Shown in pieces: positions 28,852-52,116 of a stretch of 64,000 nucleotides of DNA. The notes under the pieces are model-generated. The model saw nothing but the letters and a program-made list of their open reading frames with translations, did not search any database and had not been told where the DNA came from. The first letter of the stretch is position 1. Each line of letters begins with the position of its first letter. The DNA comes from Magallana gigas (Eukaryota), in NCBI RefSeq assembly GCF_963853765.1, contig NC_088860.1, positions 25,668,001 to 25,732,000 on the forward strand, given 5' to 3'. Made by a program: the position numbers and the translations under genes.

Positions 28852-29016
28852 NNNNNNNNNNNNNNNNNNNNNNNNNNNNNNNNNNNNNNNNNNNNNNNNN
28901 NNNNNNNNNNNNNNNNNNNNNNNNNNNNNNNNNNNNNNNNNNNNNNNNNNNNNNNNNNNNNNNNNNNNNNNNNNNNNNNNNNNNNNNNNNNNNNNNNNNN
29001 NNNNNNNNNNNNNNNN
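28852..29016. other. Assembly gap (165 N)
   Basis: Run of N characters. Confidence 1.
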
Positions 29017-34596: not shown

Positions 34597-35228
34597 GTCA
34601 ATCTTCTAAGCTCTGCAACTGCTTTTTCAGACAATGCATTAACAGATAATTTGTTGTAGCCAAAAAACGAATATTTTAGTTTATGTACATGTAGAACCGT
34701 TTTCACAAAAGCTTGGATTTTCGATGGGATGTTACTATCTAGTTTGCTCATCAAAACAAGCTGTCAAATATTTACCTTCTTTATTCTAATTCGCTAAAAG
34801 AAGCTCATTAATATTCATAGACTGTCAAAATCGGAAAGCCCCCCCCCCCCTTATACAAGAACTCCTCGGTTGTGTAAAAATGACGCTGTTTCAACTAAAA
34901 TAGACAGCCCTGGATAAAGTCAATTGCGTATCACTGTATTCACATCTGTCAGCCAATGACTGGACGGTTAATTAACCAAGTAGACCCCACCTTCATCAAA
35001 TCGGAGTTTGTCACGTACTGATCAACGCCAAGCTCTAGCTAAAACGGTTCTATATTAGAAAAAATTGTAGCTGTATTTCACAGATAACAATTTTCATTAC
35101 ATATGTATAATGAAAATGTGATTTTTTTGTTGCAATTATCCCCGTTGGTGTTTGTTGTTGTTCGTCTTTTCTCTGTTTAAAGATTAAAAATCCGATAAAG
35201 TTGTTTAAAGTTTATTCAGTTTTAATGG

Positions 35229-35480
35229 AACCATTTTAACAAGAGCTTGGGTTTTGGGTAGTTGGTGTCAAACAGCATTGTGACATAGGTCTGTCTATTT
35301 CATTGCTGGCAACTCAGCCATTGCTCTTTGAAATCAACAAGAATTGTCTAGCTTTTGAGCTTAAACTACGCAATCCGTTTGTATTTCACTTGAAACCAGC
35401 GTCATTTTCTACTTGTTTTGATGCAAGAAATAGATAGTTACGTCCTACTGAAAGTCCAAGGCCTTGTTAAAATGGTTCTA
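35229..35480 (+). mobile_element. ~250-bp MITE, family X copy 1
   Basis: Terminal inverted repeats aaccattttaacaag / cttgttaaaatggtt; internal sequence shared with three other copies. Confidence 0.85.
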
Positions 35481-35561
35481 ATTATAAAAAAGGCAACATG
35501 AAAAAAATTGAAAACCATTATTGATTCACATACTTTAATTTGGCAAAAGCATCTGAACATT

Positions 35562-38486
35562 TTAATGATTTCCTTCCCTGTCTTGGCACGTTCCAGGTTC
35601 GACCTTCACACTGAAATGATACAGCGTTGTGCCCTTGGTCCAAGAGTTATTCCACCTAGTGTTACAACCATTCTTGTTGTTGCATTTGGCTTTCAGACCA
35701 AACTAAAATAGCAAAAGTATACAGAAAGACAGGTGAATAGAATTATGAATATTCAAAACTAAAAACAAAATAAACAGATAAGTAAATACATGTATAGAAT
35801 AACAAATATTCAAAACTAAATCCATACAAAAAAAATTTCGCGTATTTTGCGAGATCCAGGTTATTTCCTTTAAAATGCGAAAAAAGCTCGTTTAAGGTCA
35901 ATGAAAACCGCCCACCTGAAAATAGTGCCTGTGTTGACATTTAGGGCTGACATCTATACACGTCGTTCTCTGCCAGTCGTCGGAGTACGCGTCCGTCACG
36001 TGATAAGCGTACACGAGGTGCGAGGCCCAGACACACGGCCTGCTGTCCGGGGGAGCTGAACAGTGTGGTCCGGAGTTATCTCCCCAGCATGGCGGGGTCT
36101 GGCCCACGTTTCCACAAAGTCTCGTCTTGATCTCAATGGCGTCGAACTCTCGCGGAGACTTAAAGACCGGATGGCGGGTTTTGTAATCGGTCTCCCACAC
36201 CGACATCGAGTAGGACAACACCAGGCGATAATTGTCCTCTGTAAGAGTCAGATTCCTGTCAAGTTGTAAACTTTGTATCTATTGCCATTTTTTTTTAAAT
36301 TTTGAATTTACCGGGTGGCAGTATATGTAAAATTTACAACATGACAGATTAGTGTTAGATAGGGCGATTTAAAGAAGCACTACGCAAAAAAGTTTGACAG
36401 TTCTGCAGTCAATTTGTGGGCGCACAATTTTAAAGACTGAAACTCTTTTATGCTTAGAAGCAAATAACTTATCAAAATTCGAAACAGTATTACCAGTGTT
36501 CAAATATACAGATAATGTATTTTTATATGACATAAGTTAAATAAAATGCCAGAATGTCCTTTTTCATTTTTTTCTTCATACGTATTAAATCTCTTTTGAA
36601 ATTTTTTTAGTCTTTTTTTAGTAGAAGTGCTTCTTGTTTGATAGGAGATAATTATATACAATGTAGTAAGAGGGTTTTTTTAATATCAATTTAGACAAAA
36701 TAACACTCTATTTATACTTCATCATTTTTAAATGATAAGCTTTTTATACGTACTTATTGCTACATTCTTGCTTTCCATTGTAATTACTGCTCCTTGCTTC
36801 GTATTGTCTGGAAACCAAATCTTATTCTGCAAATTCATATCAAATCATGTTAGTAAGGCGGTGTTACTGGTACTGAAGATTTTCAGTCAATGTCGTTACT
36901 TTATTGGGCTTTTCCAGTTAATGGCATTATTACACTGGACATTTTTAGTCAATGACATTATTACACTGGACATTTTTAGTCAATGCCATTATTACATTGA
37001 AAACTTTCAGTCAATGACATTATTACATTGAACATTTTCAGTCAATGACATTATTACATTGGACATTTTCAGTCAATGCCATTATTACATTGGATATTTC
37101 CAGTTAATGACATTATTACATTGGATAATTTCAGTTAATGACATTATTACATTGGATATTTTCAATTAATGACATTATTACATTGGACATTTTCAGTCAA
37201 TGACATTTATTTATTACATTGGACATTATTAGTCTACAAAACAATGCTTAGGTCTATCAAACTCACGTTGAATAGGGAATGTTTTCCGATTATTTTCTTG
37301 AAAAAACATTCTTCATTGTCATAATGTTCACATTCAGCTTAAAGAAAATAGTAGAAAAACATATGTTTAGAAATATTAAAAGAACCCTGTTACAGTTCAG
37401 AATATTATATATACATTATTTAAATACTTGATCATATTTTCAAAAATTCATATCGTATCAATATTAAAAAATATCAAAGAAACTTGTCACGTTTTTCCTT
37501 GCACATCAATCTCATTAGTTATGTAGCTGTTAAATTTAAACAAAATTAAAACTGTACACATAATTTCAAAGTAAAGGTTTTTGTTTCTTTTAACAAATAT
37601 GTGAATAAATCAGTAGGTTAATTTGACAGTATAATAAACAAATTTACAGCGCAATATACGATATCGATGAATACATGTGCTTGATGTGTCTTACAGTTGA
37701 ACTGGCATCTCCTCCCCCAGTAATGGCCGTCGCATAAACATTGTACCGTCCAAGTAGTATTTCCATCAACACACAGCCCCCTCCCATGGCAGAAATAGGG
37801 ATATCGAGCGCACACACCTACAGATATATTTATTGACAACTCATCAGAAAAGAAAAATTTTGGAAAAATGAGAATATGGTTAATTTTGTAAAACATACTT
37901 AACCAACACTGCTGTCTGGTGATCATTGGTAATAGAAACACTGATACAGAATTTGCAATACATAAGTAATTCTAAAAAATTTAGGGTCAAAAGAGCTAGG
38001 CAAAATAAGTTAAAGATGAAAAATACACAAATTCATGACTCGTTCTTTGATGTATATCAAACTGATTTTAAAATAGCCAGTTTAAGATATTGTTCAAAAT
38101 TTAAAAGCACAATAGTTTGTGGTTTGTTCTTAAAAATATGGGTTGTCATGTTGCAAAATTTTGTATTTACAACCACCCAGTAAATTCAAAATTTACAACA
38201 TGACAATATCCCTGCATCTATAACTTGTGAAAACTAGATCTTAAGCTCAATGCTAGGACTAGAAAGAGAGGCAATGCACTAGTATGTATCAAGCCTATGT
38301 AAAAATTACACAAATGAGAATAGAACGTTATTGTTATGGAAAACTTAAAAAAAAAAAAGACAACTCACTATTACACGTTTCTGTCGACCTTTTGGAAATT
38401 TCTTCGTTTTGTGAAAAATATTCCGACTCTGATGCAGCTGAAAGAGGAAGCATCAAAACGAGGCATGGGATCAAGTACACCATCAT
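35562..38486 (-). CDS. Paralogue A: secreted EGF + divergent MAM-like protein, 282 aa
   Basis: Exons 38486-38369, 37817-37695 (EGF), 37337-37267, 36826-36754, 36238-35916, 35702-35562; all GT-AG, phases 1,1,0,1,0; 849 nt open. Signal MMVYLIPCLVLMLPLSAA; EGF CARYPYFCHGRGLC...CLCDGHYWGRRC. Confidence 0.88.
36876..37230. repeat. 31-bp minisatellite, ~11 copies, in intron 3 of paralogue A
   Basis: Unit cattggacattttcagtcaatgacattatta recurring every 31 nt. Confidence 0.93.
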
Positions 38487-38901
38487 CTCAACCCTCGGAA
38501 CGATAATAAAACATGGACTTTGTCTGTTACCACTAAGTTATATTGATGTTCCCTAATGCAGTTAATTGATTTTAATATTTATTTCAAGAAAATAACAAGT
38601 TAGCATAAATAAAAACATTTATCTTTAATTGAATATCTTAGTGTTTATCTGGATTCAATTTTTTCTCTCTCTGAATAATTATACGCAAGTTATTAAGATA
38701 CGATCTAGTCATTAATATCTCTTATCCATTATCCATTAATATCCATAATATCGGTATATGATTTAAAGTCCCTGCTATATTTACAATGTCATCTGATAAT
38801 TGATGGTATGTATGCATGTATAATTGCGCTGCGTTAGTAACATTATAAACTTACAGAACGGATAAAATATATGAAATGAGTAATGAAAGATTTAATAGTA
38901 G

Positions 38902-38953
38902 TGTCCTTTCTGATATATTTTATTTGATAAAATGAAATATATCAGAAAGGACA
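38902..38953. repeat. Perfect 19-bp inverted repeat (hairpin)
   Basis: tgtcctttctgatatattt ... aaatatatcagaaaggaca with a 14-nt spacer, flanked by gtag on both sides. Confidence 0.85.
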
Positions 38954-40433
38954 GTAGCATTGTTTAGTCGAACATAAAAAATCTTCTTTTTTTTGCCATT
39001 TTAACATTCAGAGTTTGTTTCTGTACATGTACCATCATTTGAATGTCTGATTCAAATTAAACGTATATACATCAATAAAATCAGTGATTTCATTTAAGGT
39101 CTTTCGATTGTCGTGTGACGTCATTGTGAGCAATCCGGAATATTTTACCGTTATCGGTTATAATAATAGTGTTATGTGGTGCATAGTTTTGCCAATATTT
39201 CTTGATTTATACTTGTGTTTAACACATTTTAAGCTATGTAAAGTGAAATGACACCAATGTTTAACAATTCATAGAGAGTAGTTTGAGTTGAAATCGCTGA
39301 ATTCAATGAAAAACTGATAAAACCGTATATAGGCAAACTTGACAGAGACCACAATTCATAATTTTTTACCTGGCAAGGTAAACATTTCTTTGCAGATTTC
39401 GATAGGATATATAATGAATTACAAATGTACCAATTTTCAGTGAGTTTGAACCATTATTTCAAAAGTTATAGACGTTTTATGTTGCTAAACTGTACTTATT
39501 CATGGTTGAAAAATCGTATCAAAATGCACTGTAAATGTGATAGCTTTCATACTGGCAATTTTAAATGGCCTTAAAATGTTAAAATACTTAAAATAAAGGA
39601 TTGCGATTAATTTCTTTTAAGAATTGCTTTATTATATCGAAATTAGTTAAAATAAATGTGATGTTTGATAAGAGAGCAGTCGTTGCTTAAACTGTCCTGA
39701 GAGTGTACTTGTGTTAGCTCCTACAGCATGAACAAAATATTTGCAACATACCAATATTTAACTTTAATTTGATTGTTTGCATATTAATCATCAAACTTAA
39801 ACAAAAATTACACAGATTAAACCATAAAAACATCGAGGGTGGAGAAACCTTAATTAATATATTTAAGATGATTGAGTTCCATCTGTCGTTTTGTATTTAT
39901 TGATAGATGCAGTATAATAAATCAGAAGAAGTGGTCTTTCGTTCACACTCGGTGTTGAAATCTTGGGTGTTTCCCGTTTTGGGAGCTTTATTTGCTAGTT
40001 TGTTGTTTTGCTTTGTTGACAGAAGTTAATTAAAACATCTGTGGAAATAATGGTTACATTTACTGGTGTCCTGTTTCACAAATTTGACATTGACTAGGTA
40101 TAATATATTACTTCGTAATCAATCAAAACTTTAACAACTTTGAGAGCACGAACTGCTCGGACTGACTTCAGACTTACAAGAAGTTATAGCAACCATATAT
40201 ACATGTATATTTTGTTTCTTCGGTGTAATTAACGTGCTCATTGACAATAACAATAAAGAACGTACTTATATACTTACTTTATACGTATAAAAAGAGACTA
40301 AAATGCTTATTGTTTATAATAACCCGCAGTTTCGTGTATTTTACTGAAATGCTTGGTACATTCATCCATGAAACCGCATGAAACACATAAAAAGAATATT
40401 TATTGTTTCATTGAATTGAACTAAATATAAAGT

Positions 40434-40684
40434 AGAACTATTTTAACTAGAGCTTGGACTTTGGGTAGTTTGTGTCAAAAAGTAATATGACGTAGGCCTG
40501 TCTATTTTATTACTGGCCACTTAGCAATGGCTCATTGAAATCAACACGATTTGTCTGGCTTTTGAGCCAAGACTTTGCAATAAGTGCATATTTTACTTGA
40601 AACCCAGCCTCACTTTTAACTTTTTGACGCAAGATATAGATAGTTATGTCCTACCGAAAGTCCAAGGTCTTGTTAAAATGATTC
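40434..40684 (+). mobile_element. MITE family X copy 2
   Basis: Same internal sequence as 35229-35480; degenerate TIRs. Confidence 0.8.
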
Positions 40685-40743
40685 AACTATTCGAGCTAAC
40701 ATATGAGCTATGAGGTATAAACGGACAAAGATAGGAACTAAAC

Positions 40744-40931
40744 TACTGTATATCCGGCAGTTTTCGCGATGATCTAATTTTACTGAATACGTAGACACTA
40801 TATCCTGCACATTTACTATAAGACACTTCGAAAATCGCAAGAAATGACTCACGCAAAATGAAAAGTGCTACACATTTTCCCCATTTACGAAAATTTTGTG
40901 ACACGCGAAAATAACCCACGAATGTACGGTA
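40744..40931. mobile_element. TA-flanked MITE (Tc1/mariner-like), family Y
   Basis: Ends tactgta / tacggta; homologous to 62826-63038 (shared gctacacattttcc...aaattttgtgac.cgcgaaaa). Confidence 0.7.
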
Positions 40932-41059
40932 TAATATGTTACCGGTTTTTATCATCCGATGAGCATGAAATGGACGGGTCGTTCTGTTGTTAAAAAAAAG
41001 TTTTTCTGTAACATAGAATTCGAATACAGGCATTACAAGTTCCAGGGGAGATAACTTCT

Positions 41060-41534
41060 ATACGGTAATGATATAACTTAAATTATCTCTTCTTTTTTTT
41101 TTGTAGAATATCATACTTTTATACTAAAATGCTTCAAAACGAGCAGTTTAAAAATTCATTACATCTTACCCAATGAAATCATAGTTACTAGATATCATTC
41201 TGTTGAATTTTAGTTCTGACAAGCGAACGTGGTTTTTAATTGAACAAAAGTAAAAACCTTATGGTATGTATAATGTATAATTTCATTTTATTTCTTTTTC
41301 GAATTTGTTTTCCAAGAGCGTAGTGCATTGAGTTAGAGCGTTGATTACAAATCTGTAAGGAATGAGTTCGAATCCCTTTGGGCCTTTCACGTTTTTGACC
41401 TTTCCAAAAAAAATTTAAAATTATGTTTTTGGTCAAATAGTGTATAAACTGGAAATTCTAAAACTGTGAAAATTTTTTGACTATGATGTACTTTTATTCA
41501 CGCCAATATCGACAGGTGTCCCATACCACCTCAA
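41060..41534. mobile_element. Partial DNA transposon containing a tRNA-like segment
   Basis: Right end gtgtcccataccacctcaa; internal A/B-box-like stretch (gagttcgaatccc near 41364) without a full cloverleaf. Left boundary approximate. Confidence 0.5.
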
Positions 41535-41810
41535 TCACTTTTCGAGGACATCGATTTTCGTGGATTAAACAAAATTTCCACTTTAGTTAAAAGCGGACAA
41601 CTTTACCACCAATAACACGATTCGCTATAAAGTTAAATTAGAACTCTTTCGACTATAACACTACAATTGAAGTTTTGTGGATGTGAGAGAGTTTCAGTCG
41701 AATGTATATGTGTGCGTGATCCACTCCAATCAATGTGACAATTCATGATATGTAAAAATGCATCGTCATGGCCATTTTAGACGATATTATATTTTATTAT
41801 ATGATTGATT

Positions 41811-42040
41811 AGAACCATTTTAACAAGACCTTGGACTTTCAATAGGGCGTATTTATCTATTCCTTGCGTCGGTTTCAAGCGAAATATGCATCGATTGCGT
41901 AGTCTTAGCTTAAAACCCAGACAAATCTTGTTGATTTCAAAGAGCCATGGCTGAGTGGTCTTCAATGAAATGGCCAGGCCTATGTCACATTGTTGTTTGA
42001 CACAACTACCCAAAGTCCAAGCTCTTGTTAAAATGAATCT
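41811..42040 (-). mobile_element. MITE family X copy 3
   Basis: Reverse-complement match to copy 1; TIR agaaccattttaacaag. Confidence 0.85.
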
Positions 42041-42542
42041 GATTTCTAGCTCTGATTGGCTCATATCCAACTATATAGAAAAAAATAGAATGTTAATATA
42101 TTCACCTGCACGTGATCTAAGAGGTCAATATAACATTGATTTTCTCTACATTCGACAATAGATCATCCAATGAAATATTGCGTTTATCAATTTGTTCGGT
42201 TATGTCTTCAAACTAAAACATTTAATTTGATATGTCTGTATCAATTCGTCGCTGAATCATATATTAAAACAATTAATACTTCCGCATCCGGCTTGATAAA
42301 TATTGTACTTCTCGGGTAGCTAAATCATCGTATTGACCCCAAAAACAGAAATAATTGTATAATTTTGTATAACAATATAGAGAATACATGTAGTTTATAG
42401 CTAAAAAATCATATCACAAATTTTGAGGAAAATCTGATGGGTAATTTGTTGACCAATCAGATGCCTCCTTAATAATACACGGATCCTGTTTTGGTTTTTA
42501 ATCATTTATTCTGATATTTTTTCACACATTTTTTGTACATAT

Positions 42543-44539
42543 CTAATGCTCAAAATATTGACATGTTCCGAGCTCAAGCTTCAAGGAAAACTTGATACTG
42601 GTTGACCCCGTGCCGTGAAGGTTACAGCCCCTTGGGTTGTTGCACTTGGTTCTGACACCAAACTGAAAAGAAGGGTTCGATACGTAAAAAACTAAATTTA
42701 ACGATGTTTAAGAATTGAACCATTCTAATGCCACTTTAAAGTCTTTTCATATACATAATTATAGCAGATCTTACATTCTTTTATGTCAACTTTTGATTTA
42801 TTCATCGTTAAAAATAATACTGTACACTCACTTCCATAAAACGTCTTTCTCCCTGCGGGCTCACATCAATACAGACAACTCTCTTTTTGTTGGCGTAATC
42901 GTGTGGGTAGTAGGCGTAATGAACGAACTTTTTCTCTGTGCACCAGCGATCCTGGCGGTCTTGTTCACTGAGTCGGGAACATTCAGCCTCGTTCTCAAAC
43001 GCGCAGACTCCGTCTGCTCTATCTCTGCAACCTCTGAACATGATTTCCATCGTATCAAAATCGTGCGGTTTCCAGAAGACGATCTGCGGCTCGTAATCAT
43101 GGACATTGGCCGCCATTATGTAAGTCAAGATCAAGCGACGTGGTTTAACTAAGAAAAAAAAAGAATCAAAACTACTTCAAGTAGACATCGATATTCATCT
43201 AACTGCGCCTTTCGAAAGTTTAGAAAATCTGCATAGATTTGTATTAAAGATTAAACCTATAGGCAATACTAGAAACTAATATATTGGTTGTCTATTAGAG
43301 TAAACTGGCTTACATATCATTACGGGGTTTGTTCTTCCTATGAATACTCCATCTTTTGCGGTCTCAACACTAAAAGCTCCCTGATGAAAATAAAAAAAGA
43401 AAAAGAGACATTTTAACCATTTTAGATTCTATAAAAAAAACCATCATCATTATCTTAATATTTTTTTGTTAAGTCTTACGCTGTGCTCATTTATTGTGTG
43501 TGGTCCGTGCATTCTACTGAAGAAAAAACAAGATGGGTTGTGTCCCAAGCAATCATCTAGCAATGAAAATAAAGCTTTTAACTAGATATAATTATGTAAA
43601 TCAAATAACATGCTAAGGGAATTTGATCAAACTTGTCGGTTCTAAAGTTGCCAAAGATCTTTCCTTTTACTTGCTCGAATATTTTGAATCATTTATTAAG
43701 AGTTAATTATTGGAATATTTCCGTTTTCTGCTTTTCATTGCAGCCAGCTGTCCACGGAGTGTCCAAATTTTATATAAAGCAATAGAATTTACTTTTAGTT
43801 TAATGGACGTAAATTTTCTGTGAATAAAAAGTACATATAATTAAAGTGTAAAATTGTATATGCAGTATCTTGAGGCCTTGTTAAGGGACTTCCATAATTT
43901 TCGCACAGAAATTTTGTTAAAGGCACGTGGTTTGGTTACGTTGTAAAATGTTCACTGTTCATGAATTCGTACCATTAAATTCACAGTGGCGCCCAAAAGA
44001 CCCTCTCTCACACTGACAGTGAGTGAGTCGTGGGTTGTGGGTGTTGAGACACAGGCCTTTCCCACCGCAGAAATCCGGAACCCTGTCACATTCACCTAAA
44101 TGTAAAAGATCCATCATATATCATATCGTTAATGACGTTAATGAGAAAATAAATTTGATTTAAGGGGGCCGGATGGACGTGGCCATATTTTCTACTTTGT
44201 CTACCTCATTGAAATGAAGATCTCTGTCAAAAATATATAAAGGGAAAAATCAGACTTTAAAGCTGAACTACATGGAGGATTTTCTTCACTAAATAAACGT
44301 TTATAGCTTTAAAAAAAATCATATCTAGAAATTAAAGGTAGATCTGACGGTTAATTTGTTGACCGAACAATCTCATTAATTAGTTTCACGAATTGACTCT
44401 CTCTTTAAAAAAAAAAAAAGAATAACATACCGCATGCCTCTCCGTATTCTCGTCTCTGCAAAACTTTTTCAATATCGACAGAGCTTAACTCTGCAAAAGC
44501 TAAATGGAAAAAAGCTAAAACGAAAATAAAATTCCGCAT
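42543..44539 (-). CDS. Paralogue B: secreted EGF + divergent MAM-like protein, 270 aa
   Basis: Exons 44539-44431, 44095-43973 (EGF, 123 nt as in A), 43556-43480, 43380-43314, 43148-42832, 42662-42543; same phases as A; 813 nt open. Shares RLxLxYxM, FDxxEI, YAY, CIDVSP, FGxxxKCNNxxGC and ExGTC with A. Confidence 0.9.
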
Positions 44540-44754
44540 GTTTACGTTGGTCGACCTCTTCTGATAGTATGATAAGTTTATAAAGAGAGTTGAAACAAAA
44601 CTTATATTTTTATCGATTTTATTTAAAAACAAATGCTTTTATCGATGTAAAAGTTTGCGGGGTAATTACTTTAATTTATGAATATTTTTTTTTAATAAAT
44701 ATATTTTTGTATTTACATTAGTAATTAGTATCAATATACGTTGTAATTTAAAAG

Positions 44755-46882
44755 GCGATCCTATTAAGATTACTGTTGATCTGCATTTTAGCAATTATGA
44801 GGTAAATTATTTACATTAGCAATCAAAACTGATAATCAAGCATGTAATTAATAAAAGCACTTACTAAATGTTAGTAGTGATGCCATCGTGTTTTTATACT
44901 CGAATATCATTTCTATAAGAGATGTATAGAAAATTGGATTATATACATAATTAAAAAATATAACAATAAAACATCTGTGCAAAAAAGCACTCAGAAACAT
45001 TTCTTTTTTATATAAATTCTAGTTTGAAGGTACAAAATGTAAGAATTGCGCATGGAATGCTGATCACAAAACGAATTGCGTACTCGGCAATGGCGTACGC
45101 GAAAACTGTATGTAACAGGCAAGCAAGAATGGGGCAAGCAAGAATATGCATGCACTCATCTTTAAGCTTTGCACTTCGCAATAACCAAAAAGGGAACCGA
45201 CCTTAATGAAAAAAGGCAACTTTTTCGCCTTTGTCAAATCAAAGACGAAATTACTTGTAAATAAAATGGTGATTGGTATTTTTTGGAATCAATAGCTAGG
45301 ACATTCAGCTGAAGAGTGCAGCTTAGGCTTAAAGAAATGTCATTCAATGAAAAGAATAATTATATGTGAAGGTTATACAGCCGATTAACTGGTGAATGAT
45401 ACATTTGTTTAATTAATGAAATATTAATTTGAATCGAATTGAAGCCAGAATGAATATCTTTTCAAGATTTCTTATTTTCAACCGGTGACATCAAAAGAGC
45501 TAGAAAAGGACTAATTGGATATTAAAAGGGTTTATTTTTTCTTAATCTGCTGTGCATAAATAAAGATAAATTTTGCAATTGGAATCAAGCTATTAAAAAA
45601 AGAATAAGAATATTGTATTGGGATATACATGTAATTGGTTTAGTAACTACTTGCAGTTGGATAATTTTCCCTCAAAAATGTTCTTTTCACGGCATTAAGG
45701 GTCGTGTGTTCAGTATGTGTACAGTCGTAGCATCATGAGCAGATACAGGAGCCAAGACAGTGCATGTGAGAATGCATTTAATACCAAAAACTTTCTGTTC
45801 AAAATATGTTCACTTAGTAAGCATTCGCAATGTTAAGCATACTAGTATTTCTCTACAATCTCATTCTTCCCATGAGGTGATAAAACCCTTTCAGGGATAA
45901 CAAACTGAAAGTCGTTACATGTATATTACTTCTGGTCATTTCCCCCCATAATTCAATGCAGTGAAACTGCATTACTTACATTGTATTTACGATATGATTA
46001 CTTATTTACTATATGAAGTTTATTACAAGTTCAGTGTTTAAAAAAAAACTTACCGTATTTAGAGCAAACTCGATCTTAACAGCAATAAGTTATTAAAGGA
46101 AATTCAATTTTTTTATATACACGTATATTAAATGTCGTGTTCCTGTATATGCCATGGTGTGTGGAATCTTTTGATATGTCACTTTTAAGCGTGCGTGCCT
46201 AAAATTGAGAAATGTGTATAACGTGCTTGTTAGTTGAGAGTAAAAAAAGATACCTAATAAGGAAGGATCGTATTATTTTAGTAAAATCAAAGTTAATACC
46301 ACTGCACTCAACATATGTTTTACTGATATGAGTTTTATCCTATATCTAATAATTATGCAAACTTGTTTTTAGCCATGCCGTATCAAAATTATACATTTTT
46401 TTACATTTGCATATTAAACAACCCAAAAAGAAAAGAACAAATTATTTCAATAGATATTATAGAATATTGCTATCAACTAGTTGTTCTGAAAAATTAAAGA
46501 CTGAATTTCATTTATAGCAATTTTTATTTTCATCTTTTTTTCTCCGTTTTCTCACTTTTTAAGATTTGAAAACTACGAAAATTGTTAAGTCGTACGTAAA
46601 AAAAATTATCCCCCTTGTGCCGAGCAGTATTTCAACCAATGTAATAAATGTAAATTTTCACGTCATGTAACTATATTCTACCAATCATAATGCACAGGAA
46701 GTGCACAACCCGGAGACTGTAAATTATATCAACTCTTTATAAGGAAGACGGTAAATAATGTGAGCTATGGCAAAAATGGCAACCATTGTGGTTCCTCATC
46801 AGTTACCTTTCCTGTAATATTTTCATCATTCCAAAACACTTGGATATTTTATGATCAGAAAATACCATCAGACCGGAAATAG
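44755..46882 (+). pseudogene. Orphan exon-like segments, possibly a Cys-containing extracellular-domain remnant
   Basis: 44755-44801 (DPIKITVDLHFSNYE) joins in frame to 45023-45107 (FEGTKCKNCAWNADHKTNCVLGNGVREN, donor gtatgt); open segment 46698-46882. No start exon found, and the last two do not join directly. Confidence 0.22.
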
Positions 46883-47931
46883 AAAGCACAAGAGAACTGA
46901 TTTGTTCTTCTGTGCATAAATGACGTAAAAGGCTTAAGCAATTTGATACCTTTTTTGCCAAATATACCGAGTAAAATACTTTAAAATTGATTTGTTTTTG
47001 ACAGCATTTTTTTTTATGTACATGTATACAACATACGAAATTCCCTAGCCTTTTTTATTGAGGATTATTTCTTTCTCTTTATATTGTATTTATTTAGGGT
47101 CGTTGCGTTTTTGGAATGTTTAACTTGTCACTTTGTCAGTTTGTGATTAACGATTTCTAATCCTATGTTTTCAGTTTGTTGTATTTTATGACCTAGTTAT
47201 TGGAAATTACACTTTTTCTCTCAATACTGTCGTATCGAAATCGCCTTATATATATATCATTGCACATCAAATTTACACATTAGATTCAAGTTCAATTCCC
47301 CTTCGACACCCCCACCACCCCCTCCCCAATTTCTTTCCTTGTCCTGACTCTTACAACACGACACAACACAACACACAAAAATTCAACACAAAGTACTTTG
47401 TATTCTCATTTATTGGATTAAGACATCAAGCAACCATAAACACTTTCAATGACTGCACCCGGATGTGGTTTCCTGTATGGTGACCCCCATCAGGGAAATC
47501 TGGGTAATGTCCTGGTAATCGACAGCTTTTGCACACTTCGTAGAGGCACAAATAATTTTGAAAGATATCTGCAAGAAATTGATCAATCTAGTTTTATAAA
47601 CATGTAGGATGGGTTTTTTTTGACATGTACGTATGAAGAAAGGGTAGGGCTGTAGGGAAAATAGGCTTTGCCCCCCCCCCCAATACACCCCGGAATGAAA
47701 ATCTAGATCCACGCCTCAGATATAATTTACATCTATTTCATTGTGTATTTGAAAACCGAATTCTTGACTAAATGAATGATTATATCTAAGTTAAGATGAT
47801 TTAAATTATTCATCATACTTATCCTTCTCAGACAAGAATAGGTAAAATATTTTATTCCGAATGTTTTACAATTAAATCTGTTAGAAAAGTTATTAATTCT
47901 AAAATTATTATGTGTGTATATGTATTTTCTT

Positions 47932-47935
<4 letters not shown>

Positions 47936-47983
<48 letters not shown>
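47936..47983. repeat. (GA)n microsatellite
   Basis: About 24 units, immediately after a paralogue C splice donor on the minus strand. Confidence 0.97.
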
Positions 47984-47989
<6 letters not shown>

Positions 47990-48625
47990 GCAAACTTGGG
48001 GTCTCCGGTTTTGGGCAGCTCTATACAGAACTGATTTGATACGACATGGTTCTTAAACTGGGGTCTTTCCAAAGTTCTCAGGACCTGGGGCTCGGCGTAG
48101 GGACGTTGTAGAATTACTATCACTTTGTCTGCCTGGATTGGTACATATTGTAATGCATTGTAGAACATCACACGGAAGAAAAGATTGTGCTTTTTGTAAC
48201 CTACAAAGGTAAGAAGCTGTAAATGTCATCGCCATTTCACTAATGTAAAATTTATAACTAGCGGAAATCTGTACTGTGTAACGGGAAAATGTTCCCTATT
48301 CATTTTTTTATCCATTTTCTTTCATTCTTAGTTGGCGAACTTAATTTTCTATAAGTGCAACTGTGTACGGGCAAATAAAAAAGGGTGAAGTCTTAAACAT
48401 CCGTGATTTGGCAAATATAACACTAGTAAATATAACTTTAAAAGAAATACCCTGCTAGCACTCACCCCAGTAAATTTCACCCGTTGTCAGTACGGTCTTT
48501 CCTCCTCTTGGTAACTTAGCAATCAACTGGTTCGACGCCACATAATGCTAACCAAAAAAAAAAAATGATTCTAAAATTGAACCATTCAATCACAAAAATA
48601 TGTAATAGAGACATTTAATACATCT

Positions 48626-48682
48626 GCTGGATTTGAACCCGGGTCCCCTGTCTTTCAAAACCAGCACCATACCGATCGAGAT
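48626..48682 (-). repeat. tRNA-derived (SINE-like) fragment
   Basis: B-box GGTTCAAATCC on the minus strand; no complete tRNA stems. Confidence 0.45.
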
Positions 48683-49925
48683 ATTTAGGACGTAACTCAC
48701 AGTTTATATTTCGTAAGAATGCCACATTTCTGACAAGTATTTTTATCAATTGCATTTTCTCGGGCATTTTCGGCAGAGTCCGACTGTTTTACCGAGCTCT
48801 GTCGGAGAGGCCCAAGAAGATGCGAGCGACAGAACAAAGAGATATCAATTGATTGTGTCTGTTTCTTTATAATTACAGTAGTGGTATAAATGGTACAACT
48901 TTACGTGATGGTGTAATAACATCAAACAGTCTTGAATCATGATTCTATTGGATGCAACGTAGTCGGGTTCCAACAAAATAATTTCTTTATTCAATATCAA
49001 TGAATTAAATCAAATGGAAACATTGTCTGTGTTTACAACTTACAGTTTCGTGCAGGATCCATTGTCCCAGGCTTCTTCCACTCTCAAACGATTTGAGAAA
49101 GACACAGGCGTGTGTCTTGCAAGAATGATCTGTAAAAATATTTTTAATCATAGCTTTTAGATACATGTAACTATTCGTTCATGGTGTAAGGTCATGGCAT
49201 GGTCTCTTATGTACTACAAATACTATTAGTTTCATAGCATATTTCATACATGTTATATGTTAAATCATGTTAAATGATACTGGTATATACTGAGAATTTG
49301 ATATTAATATGATAATATATAAAGTGGAATGAAAACATGACCAAATCTAACGCAGGATATAAAAGATTTGACAAAACGACCATGAGTTTAGGTACATGAT
49401 ATCTGCTCTCTGGATCATGAAGCATTTTTAGACTTGATTAAGTCCAAATTTCAACCATTTATAAAATTACAATTTTTTCATAAAAGTACACTCGAAATAT
49501 GAAATCATCAACATAATATAGAGACACATTTTAAAAAGCATTTCATTTTTTCGATGTTTTACATCACAAGACAAAACAAAAAGACAGTGACTTTAGTCTA
49601 AGACTGCAGAATGAAAATTTAATATACTAGTATATAGAAATCATTACCTAGTTTGATGCCGCACACGTGTCCGACATAATTGTGCAGTAGCAGACAGGGC
49701 GGTCTCCGTCCACGTGACAAATCCCACCATACAGGCAGACATTTCCACTACACGGTGCTTCATAAAAGTTCAAATATTATATTTCATTCTGCAAATATTT
49801 TTTATTGTTCGTCTTCCTTATCTGCCCCCACCGTCACCAATTTCTCTTTTTATCATTCATTCAACGCAGTTCTCAACTTAAATCATTTTAGGAAAAATGC
49901 ATATATTTGAGGTCAAAAATGCTCA

Positions 49926-50100
49926 GGGTGTATTCGTTTGGTCGATTGGAGAACTGCAAGAGTAATCCTTATTTTCTCGTTTGCAATATGGAGATATCCG
50001 GTAGATCTACATTGTCTACTTTCCAAATAGCAGGTAGTCAATGGAGATCTGCTGGAGATATTCGGGACCAGTTCTGGAGGTAGCAAACGAATACACCCCT
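49926..50100. mobile_element. ~175-bp MITE, possibly PIF/Harbinger-type
   Basis: TIRs gggtgtattcgtttg / caaacgaatacaccc; tca on both flanks as a possible 3-bp TSD. Confidence 0.75.
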
Positions 50101-50531
50101 CAGACTTGAGGGCTGGTATTGACTTGAGGAAAGTTGCCGTCAGTGGGGCCTGGTCACAATTTGACGTAGATTTTTGTAATGGTTATAAAACAATGTAGAT
50201 GTACATTTGCATAAATATATATTAAATATAGATTTAAATACGAAATTGTAAAATGAAATCGGCATACGATCAAAACGGGGTTTTTTTTTAGTTAGAGACA
50301 GAACGCCCTTTGTTTTAAAGGATAACTCCAATTGTATTGTGTTACTATTTAAAAGAGGCACATCATCTAAAGCTAGAGTGATTTTTGAATTTTGAAAAAT
50401 TTCATCCCGCAATGATATTGTTTGGATTTAAATTCCGGTTTTATTTTTTGGATAAAAATTATCATTTCCAAAGGAATTTTTCTAAGAGTTTATCATAAGG
50501 AAGGGGGTTGTTTTGTTCTTTTATTAAGACT

Positions 50532-51833
50532 AGTAGGGTGATTTCACCATGCATCGGACACCTTTGGATTTTTCCCTTTGTTCACGCATCAAATATCGTC
50601 CAAATATAAATAAAACTTGTTTTAAAAGTTACAGGTTTTCCCCTTGCTTAATTATTGGAGAAAAAATTGTGAAATTGTTAAAAATGTAGAAAATAAAGCA
50701 AATTAATGAAGCGTTGAACTATTTCACCATGGATCGGACAATATTTACCAAGCATCGGACAGCTATAGCAGTGCAGTAGAGATTAAAAATAACAACATTT
50801 TCTGGTTTTAATGCAAAAATACAAATGTTCGGAAATATTAATTTATTCAATTGCTATTCATATTTCTTTTAATGTAAATCCTCAAATCTACATATAGGAA
50901 TTTAGACTGGTGCTTTTGTTTAAAGGAATATTTATCATAAGGGGTTCTTTATCTTGCCAGCTCCTACAGGAACTTTGGACTTAAAAGGGTGTGTCCGTAA
51001 AACTCGATTTTTAAGTGGTTTGAGGAAAATGTTTGTTTCAATTATTTTTTAAATTTTTATTTTACTTCACATTTAGAGTATATCACAAGGAATGGGCACA
51101 TAATCTCCATATTATTAGAAGAAATCATGCAGGGAAAACTGTCCGATGCATGGTTAATTTGCGTCCGATCCATGGTGAAATGAACATATGGTGCAATAAT
51201 GACCTTGACATTAATTGTTCAAATTTCTTGGACTTATTTTAATCAAATTTTGTTTCAAAACTTACTTCTTTCTAATTATGTTACACAGAGAGTGCATTTT
51301 CACTAATTCACAATCAAACGCACAACATTCAAATAATGCTTTAGTGTAAAATCTTCGTAACTAAATTTTCAATAATGGCGTATTTGATGTCATTTTACGA
51401 TGTCTATATTGTTATTTCTTTGACAATGTGACTGTCAAATTCTTAATAATGATAAAGTTCATTTGTTCTAATTCAGGAATATACGAAACAACATATGAGC
51501 GCATGCACATTTAGAACCATTTTAACAAGGCCTTGGACTTTCAGTAGGATGTAACTATCCATTTTTGCGTCAAAACAAGTTAAAATGATGCTGGTTTCAA
51601 GCGAAATGTACACCGATTGTGTAGTCTTCGCTCAACAGCCAGCCAAATCCTGTTGATTTCAAAGAGCCATGACTGAATGGCAAGCAATGAAATAGACAGA
51701 CCTACGTCACATCGCCGATTAACACAACTACCCAAAGTCCAAGCTCTTGTTATAATGGTTTTATTTGTATTTTTTATAAACAAAGTTGTCCGATCCAAGG
51801 TATGTGTCCGATGCATGGTTAAATCACCCTACT
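50532..51833. mobile_element. ~1.3-kb non-autonomous TIR transposon in intron 2 of paralogue C
   Basis: 30-bp TIRs agtagggtgatttcaccatgcatcggacac / gtgtccgatgcatggttaaatcaccctact (one mismatch); related internal motifs near 50725 and 51140; no transposase ORF. Confidence 0.85.
51511..51758 (-). mobile_element. MITE family X copy 4, nested in the 1.3-kb element
   Basis: Matches copy 3; TIR ttagaaccattttaacaag. Confidence 0.85.
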
Positions 51834-52116
51834 GTTTTTAAAAAAAATATACTTACAACAACTTCCGGGGGGCGGAATTTCACTCTGAAATGAAATGTTA
51901 AAAGTAGATTTTTATGTTTTTAAAAACCATTGTGATCAATATAAGAGTTGAAATTGGTCAAAATTTACTTACCCGATCGACCAATTGTTTGTCTTCGTTA
52001 AGGTTGCTTGCAGCTGATACTCCAGCAACGGCTGCGATGAGCAACAGGATTGCACAGTGGATACTCATAATCAAACTGCAGAAGAAGACTAAATGAACTG
52101 TCCGCTACACTTTCTC

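Follow-up and report, generated by a model that had tools for sequence, protein, structure and literature searches.

The MAM domain (PF00629) is an extracellular module known from EGFL6, nephronectin (NPNT), the meprins, RPTPmu, MDGA and the c-domain of the neuropilins, and EGFL6 and NPNT carry it on the C-terminal side of their EGF domains. Its disulfides pair C1 with C2 and C3 with C4. In the NRP1 MAM structure, about 10 strands form a jelly-roll that carries a metal site and four Cys in two intramolecular disulfides (PMC5104691). The Ca/Na-site residues, namely the E of CxFE, the D of DHT and a last-strand D, are conserved in meprin and RPTPmu (PMC5104691). Here we describe a family of three tandem genes (A, B and C) in a 64,000-nucleotide stretch of the Magallana gigas genome (contig NC_088860.1, positions 25,668,001 to 25,732,000; hereafter the window, with coordinates counted from its first letter). 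All three products comprise a signal peptide, one probable six-Cys EGF and a Cys-containing C-terminal domain (167-204 aa) that starts four residues past the last EGF Cys. We lean moderately towards reading this C-terminal domain as a highly divergent MAM-type jelly-roll following the EGF. The idea of an EGF-MAM miniprotein had been put forward in an earlier note on this DNA; fold, language-model and intron evidence speaks for it, sequence and profile tests do not.

The domain resembles MAM domains in being extracellular and ~160-200 aa long, in its predicted all-beta jelly-roll, in an initial Cys hairpin with an aromatic residue, in a G-x-C end and in a central exon with phase-1 and phase-0 boundaries. 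It differs from them in having neither the third Cys nor the metal-site residues, in showing no significant similarity by sequence or profile, and in its extra CI[DE] and C-x(4-5)-C cysteines and the insert of A and B. Its position behind an EGF recalls EGFL6 and NPNT; unlike them, the oyster proteins have a single EGF rather than five, lack an RGD linker and total only 246-282 aa.

Fold, language-model and intron-phase evidence

The domains under study are the following.

42543-43556, minus strand: putative MAM-like C-terminal domain of B, 193 aa, four exons
35562-37337, minus strand: equivalent domain of A, placed from family alignments
47446-49129, minus strand: equivalent domain of C, placed from family alignments

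AlphaFold 2 models of the A and C domains, computed from nine-row alignments, were both all-beta jelly-rolls of 10-12 strands (A: predicted local distance difference test (pLDDT) 55.0, predicted template modelling score (pTM) 0.52; C: pLDDT 52.9, pTM 0.55). In Foldseek searches of the PDB, the best match of the A model was the NRP1 MAM domain (5l73, E 1.7e-4, template modelling (TM) score ~0.4), in a list that also held an L-type lectin, Cry domain III, carbohydrate-binding module (CBM) family 35, LAST-MAM, meprin, an Eph ligand-binding domain and RPTPmu. The top matches of the C model were the EphA7 and EphA2 ligand-binding domains, promeprin beta, meprin alpha and NRP1 MAM. Against the Swiss-Prot part of the AlphaFold database, the C model matched human EGFL6 first (residues 421-548, E 1.5e-4, TM 0.47), and 11 of its top 20 matches lay in MAM regions (including those of meprin, the neuropilin c-domain and MDGA1), the rest being Eph ligand-binding domains. 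For the A model, ~12 of 30 matches lay in MAM regions, mixed with other jelly-rolls. The confident non-MAM structure that the earlier note had named as speaking against its proposal did not appear; both models are low-confidence jelly-rolls. The fold comparison it had suggested came out partly in favour, with jelly-roll models and MAM among the best Foldseek matches, and partly not, with pLDDT of only 55 and 53.

Language-model features pointed the same way. The top ESM-Atlas feature cluster of the C domain was 'EGFL6 (fragment)', 100% PF00629, at 0.90 with 170/256 features shared, and 27 among the matches listed belonged to the MAM set. For the A domain, ranks 1 and 3 were MAM clusters at 0.86.

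Intron phases add independent support for MAM, of moderate weight. We reconstructed five canonical multi-exon oyster MAM domains, choosing splice sites that maximised the score of a hidden Markov model (HMM). In all five, a phase-1 intron follows the first 44-53 aa (44-46 in four domains), and in four it splits the Gly ahead of [HY]Y.Y.E; a central exon of 84-89 aa and a phase-0 intron come next, and the last piece measures 24-28 aa, with a G-x-C ending in four. MAM matches on at least six chromosomes repeatedly have exon limits close to model positions 41-45 and 131-136. The central exons of A, B and C likewise have phase 1 at the 5' end and phase 0 at the 3' end, and the codon that is split in gene C encodes Gly and precedes a Tyr codon. 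The N-terminal part of the family domain spans 48-57 aa and the last exon 34-39 aa to the final Cys; the central exon has 70 aa in C and, with an insert of ~40 aa, 105-107 aa in A and B.

These intron positions hint at a register other than that of the earlier note. The stretches YRLVLSYSM, RLILTYIM and NLFFRVMFY may correspond to the 'G.Y.Y.E.S' strand, with VFKSP as 'A.L.SP', and not to the 'CL.F.Y.M' strand; the best hhalign path, which is non-significant, follows the earlier register instead.

Six Cys are common to A, B and C: a hairpin pair, the Cys of CI[DE], which is invariant across the family, a C-x(4-5)-C pair (KCNNxxGC in A and B, CASTKC in C) and a terminal Cys. The N-terminal hairpin follows the pattern C-x(4-7)-C-aromatic, and the domain ends in G-x-C or GC. 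The ~40-aa insert of A and B holds four further Cys and is absent from C. Family alignments agree with the earlier note that the canonical third Cys is absent, that CID and KCNNxxGC contribute new Cys and that the domain closes in G-x-C.

Sequence tests and other possible origins

A series of results weighs against MAM descent. Full proteins and single exons gave no PF00629 match at E<=10 in Pfam hmmscan, and a genome-wide PF00629 scan (564 Mb, 29 contigs) found at least 156 MAM exons elsewhere and none at this locus. With an HMM built from 20 single-exon oyster MAM domains taken from the PF00629 loci, the family scored -0.1 to -1.9 bits, and 104 to 370 of 500 shuffles did equally well or better, so the likeness to the MAM signature noted earlier does not rise above chance at the sequence level. 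The profile comparison proposed in the earlier note was negative too: hhalign against the 20 oyster MAM domains returned a probability of 0.1-0.4%, whether the whole family, A, B, C, the A and B subset or exon segments were used in local, greedy or global mode, and the registers were inconsistent. In the family alignments, the RL[VI]L[ST]Y stretch has no Cys and neither candidate C3 position holds one. The alignments likewise reveal neither an E shared by the whole family after C1 nor a DHT or a last-strand DD at the metal site, the register there being uncertain, and GP..DHT is not recognisable. The models are of low confidence, their fold TM-scores reach only 0.37-0.48, and geometry-only searches put MAM level with CBMs, Cry domain III, reelin, GOLD and Eph ligand-binding domains. 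The N-terminally truncated B-like protein P0005 gave no MAM signal in ESM-Atlas features (0.77), PDB sequence searches yielded only ZO-1 and UDG at E 0.2-1.3, which we took as chance, and the two-phase intron match has a chance of ~1 in 7. Because the family diverges fast internally, we regard the failure of the MAM sequence tests as weak evidence against homology.

Two further observations accompany these searches. The same genome holds a very large cluster of canonical MAM exons (G000:C5:21514000-21595000), with one uninterrupted open frame of 3427 aa that contains at least 16 tandem MAM domains. Pfam matches to MmlI, Megourin and Nairovirus_GP38 (E 0.01-0.07) were rejected as noise.

The strongest competing explanation, which we consider rather unlikely, is a jelly-roll without MAM descent, for example of discoidin/F5-8C type (MFGE8, EDIL3), reelin subrepeat B, an Eph ligand-binding domain or a CBM-like sandwich; the protein would still be a secreted binding module. 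In VIA-align, MAM ranked no higher than CBMs, SGBP-B, reelin, Cry domain III and Eph ligand-binding domains, an Atlas shape search gave Cleaved_Adhesin TM 0.60 and F5_F8_type_C 0.53-0.56 versus 0.53 for meprin MAM, and a reelin cluster stands among the feature neighbours of A (0.80). We also counted for this explanation the 'E..GC' ending of discoidin domains, which the family closing motif [VL]E.GTC resembles. However, discoidin structures were missing from the best 50 PDB and best 30 Swiss-Prot Foldseek matches of both models, neuropilins were matched through their MAM (c) domain rather than through b1/b2, discoidin (F5_F8_type_C, PF00754) had no Pfam match, and hhalign against oyster F5/8C segments stayed at chance. 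The Eph ligand-binding domain (PF01404) is a jelly-roll of similar size that leads the PDB list of the C model (E ~1e-4, TM 0.40-0.45), but it is N-terminal in receptor kinases with no preceding EGF and another Cys pattern, is absent from the language-model neighbours of the family and is not prominent for the A model. The CBM, Cleaved_Adhesin and SGBP-B sandwiches have only the jelly-roll in common with the family, being prokaryotic, glycan-binding and without the Cys framework. Language-model neighbours are mostly MAM, and the intron phases fit MAM genes.

A domain born in the oyster lineage is less probable still. It would have reached a disulfide-braced jelly-roll independently, with the four-Cys insert of A and B as a rapidly diversifying recognition surface, or its likeness to a sandwich would be convergent or an artefact of low-confidence prediction. 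An exhaustive HMMER search with the main-exon profile over 1.84 billion representatives returned eight clusters, all of this family and all ostreid; further searches that started from the family alignment or only from the C domain found nothing beyond family members. That no sequence relation to known families was found fits such an origin, as do the hhalign P of only 0.03 between C and A/B and the pLDDT of 53-55 from nine-row alignments. Yet paralogues ~16% identical independently yield all-beta models with the same neighbour families, ESM features, which are independent of AlphaFold 2, agree, and the exon phases match those of MAM genes; loss of detectable similarity is also what a fast-evolving family should show.

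Genes, transcripts and oyster relatives

Genes A, B and C lie head to tail on the minus strand of the AT-rich window (~32% GC), and each was rebuilt from its splice sites. Near-identity to annotated proteins marks the DNA as that of a Crassostrea/Magallana oyster. The EGF is a phase 1-1 exon and the C-terminal domain occupies four exons in all three.

35562-38486, minus strand: gene A, 6 coding exons, product 282 aa
38369-38486, 37695-37817 and 37267-37337, minus strand: gene A exons for the signal peptide, the EGF and the Cys hairpin
36754-36826, 35916-36238 and 35562-35702, minus strand: gene A fourth exon, main exon with the four-Cys insert, and last exon with stop
42543-44539, minus strand: gene B coding region, 6 coding exons, product 270 aa; transcript to at least 44556
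44431-44539, 43973-44095 and 43480-43556, minus strand: gene B exons for the signal peptide, the EGF and the Cys hairpin
43314-43380, 42832-43148 and 42543-42662, minus strand: gene B fourth exon, main exon with the four-Cys insert, and last exon with stop
47446-52068, minus strand: gene C, 7 coding exons, placed by tblastn of P0008 and P0009 and by splice sites
51973-52068, 51857-51884 and 49648-49757, minus strand: gene C exons for the signal peptide, a second exon and the EGF (4 nt short here)
49044-49129, 48466-48547, 47989-48200 and 47446-47568, minus strand: gene C Cys hairpin, a further exon, main exon without insert, and last exon with stop

All junctions of A and B are canonical GT-AG. 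Gene A has an intact frame, and its product is identical at 277/282 positions to P0002 (C. angulata LOC128181874, NCBI 'uncharacterized protein'). The EGF matches were all below the Pfam gathering score (EGF_2 E 0.003, EGF_Teneurin 0.004, EGF_Tenascin 8.5e-4, EGF 0.078), and the six-Cys pattern and phase 1-1 exon accompany them. The segments quoted in the earlier note are borne out for A, whose product holds ECEHYDNEECFF, YRLVLSYSM and EPGTC exactly, and for B, where they occur in the spliced product in the quoted order, with the main exon ending 6 nt earlier than on a naive reading. The segment quoted for C was mis-spliced: 'NHDSRLFDVITPSR' is intronic and belongs to no exon, according to RNA contigs and the annotated P0008 and P0009, and the actual join runs from ...GQWILHET into exon 48466-48547 (HYVASNQ...GEIYW) and on to G-YKKHNLFF. 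The range of 35562-49129 assumed earlier also misses the EGF exon and 5' exons of C (49648-52068).

The splicing of B and of the 3' exons of C is confirmed by RNA contigs. Contigs of four runs, tentatively classed as RNA, were aligned to 42450-48449. Approximately one third of the sampled words of the B locus occurred in RNA-class contigs from several studies, close to the ~39% of B that is exonic. For B, contig joints at 42662|42832, 43148|43314, 43380|43480 and 43556|43973 (three runs) correspond to introns 2-5, and contig pieces bridge intron 1 from 44096 to 44433. The donor of the B main exon (GTAAGT) lies at 42831. Gene C contigs join 47568|47992 and then run from 48201 into exon 48466-48547; (CT)n was masked in these alignments, which hides the last 3 nt of the C main exon there. 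Contig depths reached the hundreds for both B and C in two runs.

In this assembly the coding sequence of C is 737 nt, i.e. 2 mod 3. Its EGF exon has 110 nt instead of the 114 nt required for P0008 and P0009, the shortfall lies directly after the C-Y-C codons (49684-49692) relative to P0008, P0009 and P0022, and the shifted frame meets TAG at 49648-49650, just ahead of the donor. The assembled individual may carry a loss-of-function allele of C, or the assembly may be wrong at this point; other assemblies encode an intact product of 246 aa (C. gigas P0008 and P0009). That premature stop is what could suggest pseudogenes or chance open reading frames, an explanation that is hardly credible and effectively refuted for A and B, which are intact with canonical splice sites. 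Spliced transcripts of B and C are plentiful in RNA contigs of several studies, orthologues with the same exon plan occur in Saccostrea and C. virginica, and P0008, P0009 and P0022, two of them named C. gigas gene models, contain C in intact form. P0022 itself (UniProt K1PX96_MAGGI, 575 aa) is an old C. gigas model that chimerically joins parts of C, B and A with several exons skipped, and this 'EGF-like domain-containing protein' entry is a mis-annotation of the A-B-C cluster.

A, B and C are the only three family copies in this genome, and orthologues were found only in oysters. The members with a named source come from C. gigas, C. angulata, C. virginica (P0021, 286 aa) and Saccostrea cucullata (P0005, B-like; P0006, A-like). 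On one Saccostrea contig, a C-like gene lies directly upstream of the B-like gene, in the same order as here, and the A-like P0006 sits on the same contig; the C-like gene could be reconstructed with canonical splice sites and the same phases. The C-B order, the exon plan and all three paralogue types therefore predate the Crassostrea-Saccostrea split. The paralogues have diverged to an extreme degree: A and B are ~33% identical, and C is ~16% identical to either. The kinship of C with A and B is supported by identical exon phases, tandem position and colinear motifs. A literature search by accession found no publication in the library searched that names the accessions tried.

The window holds several repeats. 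A dispersed element of ~250 nt, probably SINE- or MITE-like (short interspersed nuclear element or miniature inverted-repeat transposable element), is present in four copies 75-90% alike: just downstream of A (35228-35491, plus strand), between A and B (40435-40684, plus), downstream of B (41808-42035, minus) and in the second intron of C (51514-51757, minus). Intron 3 of gene A contains a 31-nt tandem repeat of ~13 units (36843-37245), and the (CT)n microsatellite at 47926-47991 starts within a few bases of the donor of the C main exon. A run of 165 N at 28852-29016 marks an assembly gap or masked sequence, and an Rfam scan of the window gave no match.

A candidate binding family in oysters

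Under MAM descent, each gene would encode a secreted protein in which an EGF is followed by a disulfide-stabilised jelly-roll. The sandwich would have kept the MAM-like N-terminal Cys hairpin and the C-terminal G-x-C while losing the third canonical Cys and the acidic residues of the metal site. It would have gained the CI[DE] Cys, likely the new partner of the C-terminal Cys, the C-x(4-5)-C mini-loop and, in A and B only, the ~40-aa four-Cys insert, predicted to lie in one inter-strand loop. After secretion the sandwich may bind or adhere to protein or glycan, and its variable loops and the insert would confer paralogue-specific specificity. Extracellular binding or adhesion is probably the function, to judge purely from family and architecture.

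The analysis offers a fold-level assignment for an unannotated domain whose parent proteins carry no database label beyond 'uncharacterized' or 'EGF-like domain-containing'. Its practical value is modest: a candidate extracellular binding family in oysters, and a test case for remote homology in which language-model, fold and intron evidence is at odds with HMM methods. If the MAM link is true, the family would show how far a MAM domain can drift, with disulfides rewired, the metal site lost and a loop insert gained, and still apparently keep the sandwich, and it would define a minimal secreted EGF-MAM architecture in molluscs.

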